Assembly (NCBI GenBank): GCA_001655205.1
Contig: LPNZ01011470.1
Coordinates: 1 to 34,728, forward strand
Source: Lenisia limosa
Taxonomy: Eukaryota > Protista > Breviatea
DNA length: 34,728 bases
Direction of reading: 5' to 3'
Below the pieces are notes generated by a model. It was given only the letters and a program-made list of their open reading frames with translations, was not told where the DNA came from and ran no database searches. Position numbers and translations under genes: made by a program. Of this stretch, positions 5,656 to 34,728 are shown piece by piece (the stretch's first letter is position 1; each line of letters opens with the position of its first letter).

Positions 5656-7995
5656 ATGGCAGCAAAAGCAAGAGATGCGTTCCTCAAGTACAACTTCGGG
5701 GAAGACCAAGACTGGTTTAAGTTCGTTCAGACCCAGGACTTCGGCGGAGCGGCTGATAGGTCAAAAGCTGAGTTGATTCTGAGGCAGAGGTACTTCAAGC
5801 TCATGGTAGGGGAATCTTTTTTCACCTACTGTCGTCACCCCCGTGCCCTTCACCCCGATTTTATTGATTATACATTAGAATGACGACTATGAAATTGTCC
5901 CAGACCCGTATTCCGGAAGCGATGTGCCATTCACCCCTACTGTGACAGCACGACCCTCCTCCTCTACAGCCCCGTCAAGAAGGGCTCGAGGCAAACTCCC
6001 GGAGGTTATTACATCATGGGGCTTCTCTGAGTTCCGTGTTTGGTGGGTCGCTTTTGCCAGGTTTCTTCTTGTTGGTCCTATCACGATTCGTTGAATGATT
6101 CAAAATGACGTTCTTTGTTATTATTTATTTTGTAATGAAGCTTTTTTGTTCATACCATTAGGTATGGTATGAACTTCATTGCTTCATTTGGTATCCCTCT
6201 CTTCCTTGTAAGTGGTGTTGTCATTATTATTTCCCGGTTTTTCGAATGATATGCTTCGTCTTTGTTGTGCATATCCTGGTTGCTTGTATGAAACAGGCAG
6301 TTTCTTGAAAACTCGTCTAATCGAAAACACCTTTTAATTTTCGTGTGGTCACCCCATACAGGCATCCATCATGTATCCCCGTCTGGTCCTTTACTCGTTC
6401 TCTTTCTGCATGCCTGTTAGTTGGGGAAGAGTTACCGAATGAAGTATCGGCCAGATTCAACCTTTTTTTTTTTTTTTATTTCTCATTGCCATACATACAT
6501 ATAATATATACCGAACGAAGCAAAGTTTTTATATTGCAAACATTTTCTATACTAAAATGGGAGATCTATTGGGGTTTACGTGTACATTGATTGCAAAGTA
6601 TGTAGAGCCCTGAAGATTTCTTTTTATTCTCTCCGCCATTAAAAAAAATTTTTTTTTTGTCTTCATCAACGTTCACCTTTTCACCTTCTTAGTCCGCCCT
6701 TTTTGCTCGTATCTTCAACCTCTTCTTGAAGCATGGGGTAAGAGAGCGATCATTATAGTGTTTGAATAATTGAACTAGACGATGTGTGCGGTCTTGACCT
6801 GACGTCATCTTGAATTTCACATTTCTTCCATTTCCTCGGATGACCCTAATTCCTCTTTTAGTTCCCTCAATTTAACAAACAATGGTTCCAACCCCTCAAC
6901 ACTGACCACGACTTCCACTATGCCCTTCTTATTCTGGCAATGACCGGTGGGTTTCGGGGGTAAGACGTTTTAATTGTATTTATTATTGACAATTCTACGG
7001 ATAAGTTCTCATCCTCTTAGGAACCTACAGTACAGTGGCAGTATTGGTTATTTGTCTTCTATGCCTGCTGGAGGTTTGCGTCTATGCCCCGCGTGTGTTC
7101 CTCAATCCTCCTCTTGCAAAGTTAGTGAGTGAGAGTTGCTTAGGAACATGACCTCTTACATTCATGCTGGACAATTGATTCAGCTTTTTAGGCTTCCACA
7201 TTATACTTATTAGGTCATATTCGACTCCTAAACGATTTTGAGGTGTAGGCAGTAATCGGATCCACTTTCATCCCCCACTCTAATATGGTCTTTAGTTTGG
7301 CCAAGTCGGTCAATGCTCTTGTCAAGCCTCATATTCCAAGGCTCTTGGTTGTGGTATGGGGGCAGGGTTTTTTGGAGTTGTGGATATCTCGTCATGTTCC
7401 CTGCCCTTACATTCAAGGTGGCGCAAACCGAATTAGTTCTGTTGGTATCTCTTCTGATTACTGGCCAATTTATTGCATTCTTTATGTGTGCCATGTTCCT
7501 TCTGCTGCACTACACTACGAGGTGTGTTTTGGTGTGTCATACCACATACAAGTTCTGATATGACCTTGGTTTGCCTCCTGCGGGTAAGACACATCTCCAA
7601 ATACAACGTTTTCATGCTCTAGAAAATAATAGTTTTTGCAGAAGGAGTACCCCCCCCCCCCTCTAANNNNNNNNNNNNNNNNNNNNNNNNNNNNNNNNNN
7701 NNNNNNNNNNNNNNNNNNNNNNNNNNNNNNNNNNNNNNNNNNNNNNNNNNNNNNNNNNCAACTCTTGACCACTATGCTTTCCATGAGCGTTGTCCTGGTG
7801 TCATTCGCCAGGTGTATTCCTCTGTGAGGGGCATAACAACAAGACAACAACTTTTTTTCTGTCTCTTGTTATTCTTCATGTTAATGTTGGCTTCCTCATG
7901 CATCTTGTCATTAAAATTATCGTCAGTTTCGCAACCCACTAACACAATAGGTGAAAGGCTACATTGCCCAAATGGGGAACCCTTACAGGAGGTGA
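5656..7995 (+). CDS. TMEM33: TMEM33/Pom33 (UPF0121) ER/nuclear-envelope membrane protein, with a plant/protist-type N-terminal extension
   Basis: Spliced: MAAKARDAFLKYNFGEDQDWFKFVQTQDFGGAADRSKAELILRQRYFKLM / NDDYEIVPDPY...FRVWWVAFAR / YGMNFIASFGIPLFL / ASIMYPRLVLYSFSFCMP / SALFARIFNLFLKHG / FPQFNKQWFQPLNTDHDFHYALLILAMT / ... / VAQTELVLLVSLLITGQFIAFF / ... / TLDHYAFHERCPGVIRQVYSS / VKGYIAQMGNPYRR-TGA. The G-x-P-x-FN...FHY and H-x-x-CP-x-x-IR motifs resemble TMEM33/Pom33 as recalled; no HMM was run. Confidence 0.75.
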
Positions 7996-25583: not shown

Positions 25584-28500
25584 CTACCAAATTTTCAGTT
25601 CATTACGAAGTGTCTGGGAAATCAGGATGGAAGAACCCTTCCCTCTCGCCGTTGGCGGGAATAAAACAGCATAGCGTGGGAGTGATACTTTAAATGCCTA
25701 GTTTCATATGATAAGATTACCCAAACCTGTTGAGTGAAGGGCTTTGCTATGAAGCCGTCCATGCCACACGCTGTGCAGCGGATCTGGATCGTAACGGTTT
25801 GTTCAGCAAATCAAACGCACCCACCTTGTCAGCATCGGAAACGTGGGCGGTCACAGCGATGATCGGAAGATGCTCCCTGGAGAGGGGGTAAAACGAAGGA
25901 ATTTCGATAAAAAATGGTGGCGTAAAGGGACTAAGGGGGGGGGGGAGAGAAAACAAAGGTTGGTTTTAGTNNNNNNNNNNNNNNNNNNNNNNNNNNNNNN
26001 NNNNNNNNNNNNNNNNNNNNNNNNNNNNNNNNNNNNNNNNNNNNTGTCAGAGCAATAAAGAAATATTCAAGCATACCCTGTTGTTACTTCCATTTTCCTG
26101 ATTTCCTCTGTTGCCTCATAACCGTCCATGACAGGCATCTAGAGGGAAAATAGGTGACGCAAAACCTGTTTAGAGATAGAAAAACAGACGAGCTGAACAC
26201 TATGCCCCGTTGTAGGCCCACCTGGCAGTCCATAAGGACAAGAGTGTATCGTTGCAACTTGACTTTGTCCACGGCTATTTGGCCGTTTTTGGCAGTATCC
26301 GTGCGGACTCCGATCTTCTTTAGCATCGTAGTTAACACTGGGGGGAGGATCAGGATGGAAGAGGTTAAAGAATCGTCTGACCAAATGGAAGAAAAGAACC
26401 AACGCTCACATTTCATATTAAGCATATTGTCTTCTACGACAAGAACATAGTAGTCACCCCAGTTTGGCTCTTCAAGCTCAAATGCCGCTTTAAAAGTTAG
26501 TTCAGGAGTAAAGCTGCTTTTTAATTGGAGAGGATATCTCAAGTATTCAGAAGTTCAATTTAGTTTGTGCACACTAGAGACTTAGCGCTTACCTTGCAAT
26601 TCGACACATGACTTGGATTTGAGCTCAGTCGCTATATGCGACGTTGGGGAGCTTGGGACTGAGGTCCAGAGAGACTGTGAGGCTTGAAGCGCAACCGAAA
26701 CATCTGACGCAGTGTCGTCTACAGCCGCGGTCGCGACTGGGGCTGCATATATGAGGAGCATGGATCAGAGGTGGCAATATGAGGAGCATGGATCAGAGGT
26801 GGCTATATGAGGAGGAGTCAGCGGGTGGGGCTATGTTAGGGAATTATGGCAGATAACCCTATAACAAGCAAAGAAGATATGAAAGGTCATGATAACGATA
26901 ACCGACCGTCTAAGGATCGGAAGTCATCTTTCGCTCGTTCAAGAGCGTCAATGACAGTGGCAACGGAGGTGGCGGCCTTGTTGTCGGGGGTTTTGATGCT
27001 TGGTGTTTGCGGTATCGGGTTCTTTGGGGACACCACTGGTGCTGTTTGATAAAGCCATGACTAATATTAAGCCTATGATAGTTTATTATTTCAATCAAAG
27101 AAATCCCTTTGTATTGTATATTATTCCCTTTACCCATGATCATTTTCTCTCCTTGTACTCCCCCTCCCTCCTACATGCACGTGACTTGGAGTTGCAAGAT
27201 GATGATGTCGATGACAAGAACGGCTTAGTGCTGGATCGGCTCTGTCGGGGTGAAGGCGGCTTGCCCTTGGTGAAGGGTTCGCTTGGGAGACTGTGAGAGG
27301 GACGAATTTGGGGACTAGGGGGTAAGAGGAAGTGTGGGCTGAATAGGTCAAAAACTGGGGCTCATCAAAATATAAGGTGATAATTGTTTTGAACAAATAG
27401 TTAAAAATACAGACGGTGGAATTTTAACCTCAATGTTTGAAAAAATAGAGAAGCCATTTTTTCCAGAGAGTTATTAGTTTCCCAATTTTGACTTGGTTAA
27501 AACTGGGAAGTTATTTGGACAGTTTGTGAGTCAAGTAAACGAGTGAAAAGATTAACAAATAGTAACACCTCAAAACAAAGGCCTACTTTTCGAATGGGGG
27601 GCTGAGAGGAGTGACAGGGGAAAGGTCCTAAAGGGTTAAAATGAAAGGGAGAAAAGGAGCCATATCATATAAACTCATCGTTCCGTCTTTGGACCAAAAA
27701 CACGCACGGCGTTTCCCGACATTGTAATTTGTAACAATCACTCTGAATATAGTAGCCGTTTGTGGCCTACCTGGAGGGGGGTTCGCAAAGCCGTTGCAGC
27801 AAGGTTGGTATCGATGATGGGCAGTGTGCTCTACAAACAATAAGCGATATTACGAAATATATACATGTAAATAGGTGTACATTTTCTAAAAAATAACATT
27901 GAAATCAATTGTTATGCACCAGAACATCAAGCCATAACAAACTTATATTGAATTTGTGATTTCGTAAGATTCACGTATTTAGTCCTGCCTTATTTAGCCA
28001 AAATATTAAGGCTATTGAGCCTCTTTACGACGCTCAAAACCACCACCATCCGCGTCCCTTGAAATTGTTATGTGTCTGTATCTAGGATGCCTGATACATA
28101 TCATATAATTATGTAATACAGCTTCAATGAAGGAGGGGTGTTTTGAGTATTTTCAAGACTGTAAAACACTGTCATCCAACATAGTTGCTCTCTGAGATTG
28201 TATATCATGGTTGAACATGTACTTTCAATACTCGAATTGTCACAATGAACATATGATATGATGTATCTCTATATTTATGCAAATATACATGTATACATGT
28301 ATCTCTCGATATGTATAATACCTATCACATTTTATATTAATGGTATGTGGTAACAGTTTATGGTACTCATAGAGTGCATATCTGGGGGTGAAATAAAGTA
28401 GTATTTACATATTCATTGTTCAACTTTTTTCAATAATGCGCATCAGCCTCCGCCAACATAGTAGTTCGGAGCACTGGTACAGGAATGCGTGGTGGATGGC

Positions 28501-31500: not shown

Positions 31501-34500
31501 AAAGTAGCAAAACTCTGACGTCATTGTTATCCGTGACAAGTTTATTTTCTTAACCTGCTTTATTGTCTATACTATATAATTTGATAGAGTATAGTGGCTA
31601 CTTTCAACCCGTTGCTTGCCAGTTTTCTAACGATTTAGTTCCCTTCATTTCTCAGTCTCCACCGACTTCATCTCTTCCGAAGAGACGGAGAGCAGCTCTT
31701 AGAAGTACAGGTTGATCAACCAAGAACGTCAATCCTGGCCGAAGTCCCCAATTTCATTTCTTGATCTGAGGCGTGTCGCTCCAAAGGTTTCAAGCCTCTC
31801 AAAGTTGGCACTTGAATGAAAGTAAACTATATTTTGATGGGTTATAAATTCCACCATTTAACCTATTCTTCAATCTCTTTTTGGTCGCTTGTTCAGAAGT
31901 CTCTTTGGTGTGCGGCCTTGTGTTACCAGTGGAGGTTGCAACACTCACTGCTCGAGCAGGTATTCAAGAAGTGCTCTAGTATACGATTCATGTGGGTGAT
32001 TTATAATGAAACGAATGTTAATACTCCTTGGAAGTGTAGATTATTGTCAAACCTTGGACTAGGTCGACCCAGTCTCAGAATACTGCAGCCACTATACACA
32101 CAAAGAGTCGTACCTGTGGGGCACAGCGGGTGCTGGGACCAGTTGGGCAGAGAAGCGAAAAGTGCTGCCCTTGCCATGGGTGGACGTGAAGTTGCATGAG
32201 CCTNNNNNNNNNNNNNNNNNNNNNNNNNNNNNNNNNNNNNNNNNNNNNNNNNNNNNNNNNNNNNNNNNNNNNNNNNNNNNNNNNNNNNNNNNNNNNNNNN
32301 NNNNNNNNNNNNNNNNNNNNNNNNNNNNNNNNNNAGCCTTTCAATAATTGAATGTAGCCTGGAACCGCCTTACCTCCCATAGTAGTAGCCAGTTGGCGCA
32401 CGAGAGAGAGGCCTAATCCCATGCCTCCGTGGGAGCGTGTGTGTGTCGTGTCAACCTTTAGAAAATTAGGATAAATCCTGCTCAAAATATGTTAAAAAAA
32501 ACCGTAAAGAACAAAAGTGGTGGATCCCATTGCACCCACCTGGGAAAAAGCTCTGAAGAGTTTGCCCTTATCGATGTCTTTGATACCGCACCCCGTGTCG
32601 GTCACAGACCATCGGATTGCTGCACCCTGGCCCGTCATCATGTCCCCACTGTTGGCCTAAAAGGGGTGAAATCGGACTGATATCCAGATCACCAACAAAG
32701 GGAAATTTGCATGGGAGTGGTGAGAACACTCCAATAACAAACACGCATGATGGTTTTCGAAAGGAGGAAGAAAAAGAAATATTGACGAATGTTGCCACCC
32801 CTACCGTGGCTACTTCCGCGATGACAATGACGGCACCGGAAACAGTGAACTTCAGCGCGTTTGATAACAGGGCCTAATGGGTAAGGGAACGAATAGGTAC
32901 TATTATACAGCATTTTCAGATATCTAAAGAGCAATAACTAACCTTGATCATTTGAAGAATGCGACGGCGATCTCCAATCAATCTGAGGGGGGGGGGGGGN
33001 NNNNNNNNNNNNNNNNNNNNNNNNNNNNNNNNNNNNNNNNNNNNNNNNNNNNNNNNNNNNNNNNNNNNNNNNNNNNNNNNNNNNNNNNNNNNNNNNNNNN
33101 NNCATTACATCTATTATATCCAAAGATACCTGACAGGCACAGCAGGTGAACAAAGAGCGACAAGTTCCACTCCAGGCTGGCACATCGGGTACAAGTCAGA
33201 TACAGCCTGGTGGGTGGGAAAGGTGAGATAGTGTTTTGGAGGTTTGGGATATTTCAGCTTGATAGTCCAGCTGTTACGTTTCCGCTAAAATATCAACATC
33301 AACCAAAACCCTGTTTAGCAATGGGTAGTAGTGGAAAAAGTAAGGATTGTTAGTCTCAGTAGTGAACAACAGCCAATGTTACCCCACCTCGTCAAGCAGG
33401 GAAACGACGTTGAATGGCGAAGTTTGAAGTATCAGCTCTCCGGCCTCCAGCATCGTATAGTCAAGTACACTAAGTGGATGATGAGGAAGTTCTTTCGGTA
33501 AGTGGATGATGAGGAAGTTCTTTCGGTAAGTGGATGATGAGGAAGTTCTTGAACTGTACATATCCCTCCCCCTAAAAAACAATCTCAAAATTATTCAATA
33601 AATGTACCAGATAGTATTTGATCCTGCAAAGCCCTGGTTAACAGGCAATTACGATGAAAACACCCTGTGAACCTGTCGACAATACTGAGAAGGGCTTCGG
33701 ACGACTTGCCAATAACTTCCAAAAGGGGCGCGGTTTCCTAGGATGTTACGAAATATCAGAATATCTTAATAAAGTACAATATGTTACATGTAGATTATGT
33801 AGCCGAAATGCCAGTATGATATTACCTATTACCTGGGTTTCCTGGTTTTTGAGGAGCATTCTTGCACTGATAACATGATGAAGGGGCGTCCTAAGGAAAT
33901 TGTTAGCTTGGAAGGGGGGGGGGGTGAATATACTGCATTTGGAAGCTGATAGGCAAAGACCTTTCTGACAAAAGAAACTAAAAAAGGGAAAGAATTGCAT
34001 TTATTACAAGCCCGACCCCAACCTCAGCTCATGTGACATGTTCGCCAGGAACAGGCGTTTTGCCTCGGTGGCGCTAGCGGCTGTTTTCATCGCCTCATTC
34101 GCTGGGTTGTAACGGGGGGTACATATACGACGAGTGAAATTCAACAATAACAATAATTCTTACCAAGATTGGGGAATTAATGACACACACACAAAACACT
34201 ATTTCACTGTCGCACCCGGGGTGAATGTGGCATCACAATCACATCCATACCATTAGCAGCAAGGCTTCTTGAAGTGACGTCTCTGGTCATACCCGTGAAA
34301 AACCGTTCTCCGTTGCTACAATATAAAAAATGCCGCTGAGACAGGAACAAAGACCCAAAACACAGAAGGTGAAAAAAGAAGTAACAAAGAAGCAATATGT
34401 ATATTGGTAAAATATCTTTAGCATAATATTTGTCAAGAATTCGATCATTGAAGCCCATCACAACCCCTTGTACATGAAGAACTCGGATACGGCCAGGTCG

Positions 34501-34728
34501 ATCTGAACGATCTCGCCAGTCTTGCGCACGCCCTTGACAAGTCGCCCGGTTGTTCCGATAATGTGCGGCACGTTGGTGCGGAGGTATTTCTATGAGATGC
34601 ATAATGCAATTTTTTTAAAAAAAAAACAGCAAAAAATGATATAATAATAATCTTGAAAACCAAACAAACCGAGAAGACAGCCCTAGCAACACACCCCCCC
34701 GTACCTATTTCGCAACACACCCCCCGTA
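25584..34728 (-). CDS. Hybrid sensor histidine kinase: PAS - HisKA - HATPase_c - degenerate receiver(s)/long linker - receiver; 5' end outside window
   Basis: PAS: KYLRTNVPHIIGTTGRLVKGVRKTGEIVQIDLAVSEFF (34474-34589) / INGERFFTGMTRDVTSR (34251-34315). H-box: AKRLFLANMSHELR (34023-34101) / TPLHHVISARMLL. N-box: LLSNALKFT. G1: VTDTGCGI. F-box: LFRAFSQ. G2: TRSHGGMGLGLSLVRQLATTMGG. G3: STHGKGSTFRF. Terminal receiver: VLVVEDN / ...LVLMDCQ / MPVMDGYEATEEIRKME / PIIAVTAHVSDADK / IRCTACGMDGFIAKPFTQQ / TLRNELKIW-TAG. The last in-window exon begins at 34589. Some linker exons are only approximately resolved. Confidence 0.95.
26749..26814. repeat. Intronic tandem repeat, 28 bp unit, about 2.4 copies, abutting a 3' splice site
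   Basis: Unit ATATGAGGAGCATGGATCAGAGGTGGC(A/T) starts at 26749, 26777 and 26805. Confidence 0.9.
29675..29771. mobile_element. ~100 bp hairpin/MITE-like element, copy 2 (intronic, opposite orientation)
   Basis: The reverse complement reads AGGGATTCACTTCGGTTTGAAAAAGATTGATTTTTTCGACAAATCCTCAATAATTATCGATACTTTACCGGTATTTTTCGAACCGAAGGGAAGCTAC. This is colinear with the 13791-13892 element in both arms and core. Confidence 0.65.
33471..33550. repeat. Intronic tandem repeat, 28 bp unit, about 2.9 copies, overlapping a 3' splice site
   Basis: Unit TAAGTGGATGATGAGGAAGTTCTTTCGG starts at 33471, 33499 and 33527. Confidence 0.92.
34686..34728. repeat. Intronic tandem repeat, period 26, running to the window end
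   Basis: GCAACACACCCCCCCGTACCTATTTC is followed by GCAACACACCCCCCGTA. Confidence 0.75.

Follow-up and report, generated by a model that had tools for sequence, protein, structure and literature searches.

A likely FixL-type PAS histidine kinase encoded by an intron-rich gene of the protist Lenisia limosa

The window analysed here is the 34,728-nucleotide (nt) Lenisia limosa contig LPNZ01011470.1, and coordinates below are window positions unless another contig is named. Six-frame translation together with splice-site inspection placed a PAS-kinase gene on the minus strand, with at least 11 GT-AG introns of approximately 80–220 nt interrupting its exons. The gene continues past the window end onto a second public sequence, the ENA assembly contig ERZ3820729 NODE_7161 (1473 nt; referred to as L001). 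Kinase exons E5–E11 were modelled by tblastn with retrieved homologues as guides, and homologues are referred to by numbers beginning with P. The features recovered, in coding order, were the following:

L001:164-211 (virtual window 34805-34758, minus strand): exon E0, 48 nt, with cAG before and GTACGG after; ILMLPEVAAEHDGYIK.
34590..34728, minus strand: 3' 139 nt of the E0-E1 intron; all frames lack an open exon; T-rich tract, AG at 34591-34590.
34474..34589, minus strand: exon E1, 38 amino acids between AG and GT; end of the F-alpha helix, FG loop (PHIIG, TTGR), G and H beta strands; KYLRTNVPHIIGTTGRLVKGVRKTGEIVQIDLAVSEFF.
34251..34315, minus strand: exon E2, 21 amino acids between AG and GT; I-beta strand and DVT (DIT-type) junction motif; (I)NGERFFTGMTRDVTSRSLAAN.
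34023..34101, minus strand: exon E3, helical linker and first half of the H-box; (A)NEAMKTAASATEAKRLFLANMSHEL.
33833..33890, minus strand: exon E4, from splice sites and frame; remaining H-box and DHp helix 1; (R)TPLHHVISARMLLKNQETQ.
33673..33737, minus strand: exon E5, DHp; ETAPLLEVIGKSSEALLSIVD; GT-AG, open frame, aligning to homologue P0006.
33388..33469, minus strand: exon E6, DHp helix 2; (S)VLDYTMLEAGELILQTSPFNVVSLLDE; GT-AG, open frame.
33130..33206, minus strand: exon E7, start of the HATPase_c region; AVSDLYPMCQPGVELVALCSPAVPV; GT-AG, open frame.
32943..32982, minus strand: exon E8; (R)LIGDRRRILQMIK; the preceding intron holds the N gap 33000-33102.
32805..32873, minus strand: exon E9, N box; ALLSNALKFTVSGAVIVIAEVAT; from tblastn and open frame.
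32540..32656, minus strand: exon E10, G1 box DTGCGI and F box FRAFSQ; Pfam HATPase_c profile positions 35-63.
32374..32455, minus strand: exon E11, G2 box GGMGLGL; Pfam HATPase_c profile positions 65-88.
32140..32202, minus strand: end of HATPase_c; GSCNFTSTHGKGSTFRFSAQL; from tblastn to P0053, its acceptor lost in the N gap 32204-32334.
25739..26455, minus strand: receiver (REC) exons, YYVLVVEDN..., ...LVLMDCQ, MPVMDGYEATEEIRKME, LPIIAVTAH..., GMDGFIAKP; from tblastn and frame translation.

Exons E1–E4 each possess an AG acceptor and a GT donor, and their splicing gives KYLRTNVPHIIGTTGRLVKGVRKTGEIVQIDLAVSEFFINGERFFTGMTRDVTSRSLAANANEAMKTAASATEAKRLFLANMSHELRTPLHHVISARMLLKNQETQ, which is exactly the peptide that a sequence-only reading of this DNA had quoted for the C-terminal half of the PAS domain, the linker and the H-box. 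That reading had described a PAS domain leading directly through a helical linker into an intact H-box, an arrangement present in the spliced E1–E4 product, and it had claimed retention of the PHIIG FG loop and of its Arg after a one-residue insertion, which E1 showed as PHIIGTTGR. E3 gave a weak Pfam HisKA match (profile positions 1-13) as well as a tblastn match to the HisKA domains of P0006 and P0055, and the DVT-motif D was separated from the H-box His by 33 residues in comparison to 30–34 in six homologous PAS histidine kinases. The first Lys (K at 34589) is immediately preceded by an in-frame TAG that also serves as the acceptor AG. An upstream exon within 34590-34728 was considered and rejected, as the sole GT-preceded frame in this interval runs into a stop, and a 'NEAMK' at 6188 was dismissed as a chance match. 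With no exon in 34590-34728, the N-terminal part of the PAS domain lies outside the window.

Comparison with L001 extended the gene in this direction. Once reverse-complemented, window 34728-33496 matches L001:241-1473 without a single mismatch over 1233 nt, and L001:1-240 reaches 240 nt past the window end. A mechanical open reading frame of 132 amino acids (34207-34602, minus strand), which overlaps E1 and E2, corresponds to a called gene on the public ENA contig. Exon E0, limited upstream by an in-frame TAA at L001:152-154, joins E1 in phase 0 (...PEVAAEHDGYIK / KYLRTNVPHIIG), where the junction peptide is EHDGYIK / KYLRTNVPHIIGTTGR and the predicted E0-E1 join is GGTTATATAAAG to AAATACCTCCGC. 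E0 (...AAEHDGYIK) places a His exactly six residues ahead of the KYLRT exon, at the position of H200 in Bradyrhizobium japonicum FixL (BjFixL), whose counterpart stretch reads H-D-S-Y-I-S-R-Y-R-T-T-S-D-P-H-I-I-G-I-G-R. The sequence-only reading had anticipated, in an exon beyond the window, a proximal His some six residues ahead of KYLRT, as part of an H-x-x-Y directly before KYLRT; both the distance and the motif (EHDGYIK) were found in the L001 extension. The lack of a His at this position had been set beforehand as the refutation, and since a His is present at the H200 equivalent this objection falls.

Exons E0–E11 form twelve GT-AG exons in a single open frame of 299 amino acids, in which the boxes follow each other in the order H (SHELRTPL), N (LLSNALKFT), G1 (DTGCGI), F (FRAFSQ) and G2 (GGMGLGL), and in which successive exon pieces matched consecutive HATPase_c profile positions. 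Over its full length the model could be aligned with the PAS, HisKA and HATPase_c domains of P0006 (35.6% identity over 306 amino acids, E=5e-56), a homologue whose HisKA and HATPase_c domains pass Pfam. The predicted product has a histidine kinase core (HisKA plus HATPase_c) with a complete box set, and the fusion of an intron-rich eukaryotic kinase to a PAS domain that had been proposed earlier was borne out by one open frame carrying all kinase boxes.

Twelve consecutive exons in one open frame with intact kinase boxes are difficult to reconcile with a decaying pseudogene or an assembly chimera, a reading we consider very improbable even though the scaffold is rich in N gaps, two of them within the gene (33000-33102 and 32204-32334), terminates within the gene and carries tandem repeats at intron ends. 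The second assembly (L001) is identical in sequence, and E1 words were found in a polyA RNA run. In this run (X2, from the same study) the fraction of sampled E1 31-mers present was 0.63, and across the 899-nt intron-containing region it was 0.17, where approximately 0.23 would be expected from exons alone; these word fractions fit a spliced transcript, short of proving its junctions.

Tandem repeats of 24–28 nt in 2–3 perfect or near-perfect copies were observed at intron ends at 33471-33550, 26749-26814, L001:1-55 and L001:203-285, the last of which overlaps window 34684-34728 and extends beyond it. In one of them the last 9 nt of E0 recur together with the GTACGG donor, in another the stretch immediately ahead of the E6 acceptor is duplicated, and both public contig ends terminate inside such repeats. 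Additionally, runs of 11–12 C on the minus strand were found in the introns before E8 (32983-32999) and E4 (33905-33920); the former abuts the E8 acceptor and is adjoined by the assembly gap, and the latter lies approximately 24 nt upstream of the E4 acceptor.

Approximately 5.7 kb downstream of the HATPase_c end, on the same strand, the REC exons encode the motifs VLVVEDN, LVLMDCQ-MPVMDGYEAT, IIAVTAH and GFIAKP of a complete receiver domain, and this region matched Pfam Response_reg over profile positions 14-51. The kinase is probably a hybrid, and the REC exons may contribute the receiver of the same polypeptide.

The type of the PAS domain was determined from its exons and from a family profile. 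E1 and E2 were queried separately against 177,635 distinct PDB sequences. For E1 alone the top six matches were all FixL chains (E of about 0.08), and for E2 alone FixL accounted for 7 of 8 matches (best E=0.25), with GERFFTG identical to Sinorhizobium meliloti FixL (RmFixL). The matches of the two exons were collinear in the FixL chain, and on these alignments the resemblance to FixL is judged to be beyond chance. A search of 1.84 billion representatives with E1 retrieved 55 related proteins, and nearly all of their matching PAS domains had LMP-x-x-x-x-x-H-D-x-Y-L upstream with the His in register; no near-identical counterpart of the window protein occurred among the 50% representatives. Single PAS exons, as pieces too short for Pfam, gave no match there, and a protein atlas search with E1 gave generic PAS leads only, all <0.9.

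A profile (A1) was built from 36 homologous PAS domains, and the spliced product was examined by local HMMER and BLAST. Against the PDB, A1 matched RmFixL (1d06, S. meliloti) at E=1e-44, BjFixL at about 1e-43 and E. coli DosP at 5e-28, in comparison to 6e-13 for the next match and still weaker values for LOV and other PAS domains. This ranking of FixL, then DosP, above other PAS domains upheld the affinity for which a HMMER comparison had been suggested. The 72-amino-acid window fragment scored 93 bits against A1 over profile positions 59-129 with one inserted FG-loop residue, and E0 and E2 fitted the profile as well as E1, though both were absent from homologue selection. The proximal His falls in profile column 69, where 362 of 365 complete homologous domains likewise have H, and the fragment has the consensus residue at all columns conserved at ≥88% (H, D, Y, G, E). 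Past the one-residue insertion, the FG-loop Arg corresponds to column 89, where 82% of homologues have R. By hand count on the alignments, identity over approximately 70 residues was about 42% to BjFixL and about 47% to RmFixL. The same alignments showed that the pocket residues H214 and R220 are kept and that I, L or V occupies the positions of I215, L236 and I238, the distal hydrophobic residues in what we take to be BjFixL numbering. FixL and DosP fall within one PAS cluster (cluster 3), and protist members of this heme-PAS cluster have also been listed (Xing et al. 2023, PMC10468136).

Our analysis of profile, pocket residues and kinase context makes it likely that the kinase-adjacent PAS domain belongs to the FixL/DosP heme-binding type, and that the gene encodes a FixL-type heme-PAS kinase. 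Several points weigh against this interpretation. The E0-E1 junction is deduced from its splice signals, its phase and the fit to the profile rather than from a read that spans it, and L001 may share raw data with the window, so that its confirmation of the sequence is not independent. Upstream of L001:164 the sequence consists of intron and then the contig end, and the N-terminal half of the PAS domain (A-beta to E-alpha), together with anything that precedes it, lies beyond what was recovered. A Lys stands at the position of FixL R206, and the FG loop (GTTGR) exceeds that of the crystallised FixLs (GIGR in BjFixL) by one residue, which is common to P0006, P0007, P0021, P0026, P0029, P0038, P0040 and P0053. 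The family is large, and experiments have demonstrated heme binding for few of its members. Finally, the SHELRTPL hybrid-type kinase suggests that the whole protein is no orthologue of rhizobial FixL, and the FixL-type label applies to the PAS domain only.

The Lys at R206 and the extra FG-loop residue would also suit a domain that is FixL-like by descent and not an oxygen (O2) sensor, either using heme for nitric oxide (NO), carbon monoxide (CO) or redox or having lost heme in favour of another small ligand or of dimerisation, as in human PASK PAS-A. Ligand specificity is unreadable from sequence, the His is absent in 40% of this PAS cluster, and eukaryotic PASK PAS domains derived from the cluster changed function (Xing et al. 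2023, PMC10468136). We nevertheless regard this alternative as unlikely, as His, H214, R220 and the distal I/L/V residues are all kept here and, for a PAS domain, the overall resemblance to the two crystallised FixL domains that sense O2 is close.

For the FixL-type heme-PAS kinase, heme binding and O2 regulation are what we infer by homology with FixL. In such a mechanism, heme b would be held by the F-alpha His of EHDGYIK (E0), again by homology with FixL, and the FG loop (PHIIGTTGR) with its Arg would react to a diatomic ligand, of which O2 is the likeliest. The signal would exit via the DVT junction and the helical linker of approximately 30 residues to the DHp H-box SHELRTPL, where it would switch autophosphorylation of the DHp His, and the phosphoryl group would pass to a receiver, for which the REC exons some 5.7 kb downstream are the probable source. 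What the ligand is (O2, NO, CO or redox) and whether it activates or inhibits the kinase are likewise a matter of inference.

Phylogenetic analysis by FastTree included 365 domains and the 70 columns covered by the window PAS, which formed a clade, with support 0.94, with small PAS histidine kinases of bacterial type (among them P0040, P0026, P0044 and P0055) and lay apart from the giant eukaryotic multi-PAS proteins. P0040 is a MASE3-PAS-PAS-histidine kinase on a 2-Mb contig. Such a grouping could be taken to favour bacterial contamination with an ordinary FixL-like kinase, which is hardly conceivable here: at least 11 spliceosomal-type GT-AG introns, unreadable as a bacterial open reading frame, rule it out, and no retrieved relative exceeded 37% identity over the whole length, and none was a close orthologue. 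The tree hints, on 70 columns only, at a bacterial ancestry followed by intron gain, and the many introns argue for a long eukaryotic residence over recent transfer.

Among the closest whole-length relatives is P0007 (PAS-PAS-HisKA-HATPase-REC x3-Hpt), encoded on an intron-free, gene-dense metagenomic contig (L002; ENA k141_211729, 26.6 kb). Its neighbours encode LicD, a glycosyltransferase 25, an RNase H and a 2,947-amino-acid ankyrin/SecA-DEAD protein, a context that could be bacterial or giant-virus-like.

The homologues of E1 also included giant proteins of 2,000–3,600 amino acids with 10–13 tandem FixL-type PAS domains, every one of which possesses the F-alpha His. This set includes P0001-P0003, P0005, P0008, P0011, P0013-P0015, P0018 and P0020; in P0001 the PAS domains are accompanied by a TmcB-type TPR block, and the diplonemid Sulcionema specki is the source of P0002. 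No title or abstract among the papers retrieved on diplonemid PAS domains concerns such giant proteins.

A broader and more speculative proposal, possible but doubtful in our view, is that the window gene encodes a long-resident working eukaryotic sensor of O2 (or NO/CO) that feeds a His-Asp phosphorelay, within a largely overlooked eukaryotic radiation of FixL-type heme-PAS proteins that would include P0001-P0003. If true, this would indicate direct heme-based gas sensing in protists, independent of the prolyl-hydroxylase/HIF route of animals. Direct O2 sensing by single-celled eukaryotes is poorly known, and the window gene provides a clean candidate, in that every FixL heme-pocket determinant legible in the recovered part is present beside an intact kinase. 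This adjacency of PAS domain and intact kinase makes heme binding and O2-switched autophosphorylation testable at the bench.

In comparison to known systems, rhizobial FixL (B. japonicum 1DRM/1DP6/1XJ2 and S. meliloti 1D06) was the best solved match for each PAS exon and for the profile. Common to FixL and the window protein are the H-D-x-Y-x-x-x-Y F-alpha motif, PHIIG, the FG-loop Arg, the distal I/L/V residues, GERFFTG, the RD(L/V)T junction and the position of the PAS domain directly upstream of the kinase helix. The window gene differs in having GTTGR in place of GIGR/GIDR, Lys at R206 and many spliceosomal introns, and also in its SHELRTPL-type H-box and probable receiver domain, whereas in FixL the H-box is of the HELNQPL type and FixJ is a separate partner protein. 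E. coli DosP (EcDOS), from the same PAS cluster 3 and likewise with the F-alpha His, was the second-best solved family (5e-28); its output is a cyclic di-GMP phosphodiesterase, and the window PAS is clearly closer to FixL than to DosP.

Three FixL-like PAS-histidine kinase-REC proteins of Mastigamoeba balamuthi have been read as bacterial transfers and possible O2 sensors (Zarsky et al. 2021, PMC8136499). As in that case, the window PAS groups with bacterial-type domains, a likeness between the systems drawn by description, and in contrast to the Mastigamoeba kinases the window gene is heavily intron-laden. In Chlamydomonas reinhardtii, the FixL-type PAS proteins termed FXL reportedly bind heme and O2, and are said to be uncoupled from a histidine kinase core. 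With FixL-like kinases on record in Mastigamoeba and a heme-PAS reported from Chlamydomonas, the conceptual step taken here is modest. Multi-PAS hybrid kinases of protists, with the order PAS, HisKA/HATPase_c, REC, have been described from oomycetes, cryptophytes, haptophytes and amoebozoans in a survey in which 'heme' and 'FixL' have 0 occurrences (Kabbara et al. 2019, PMC6324907); in comparison to these kinases, the window gene has an assigned PAS type. It is, with good support from its sequence, an addition to the known FixL-like protist kinases rather than a new principle, and it is notable among them for its intron load and for a complete pocket signature over the recovered part.

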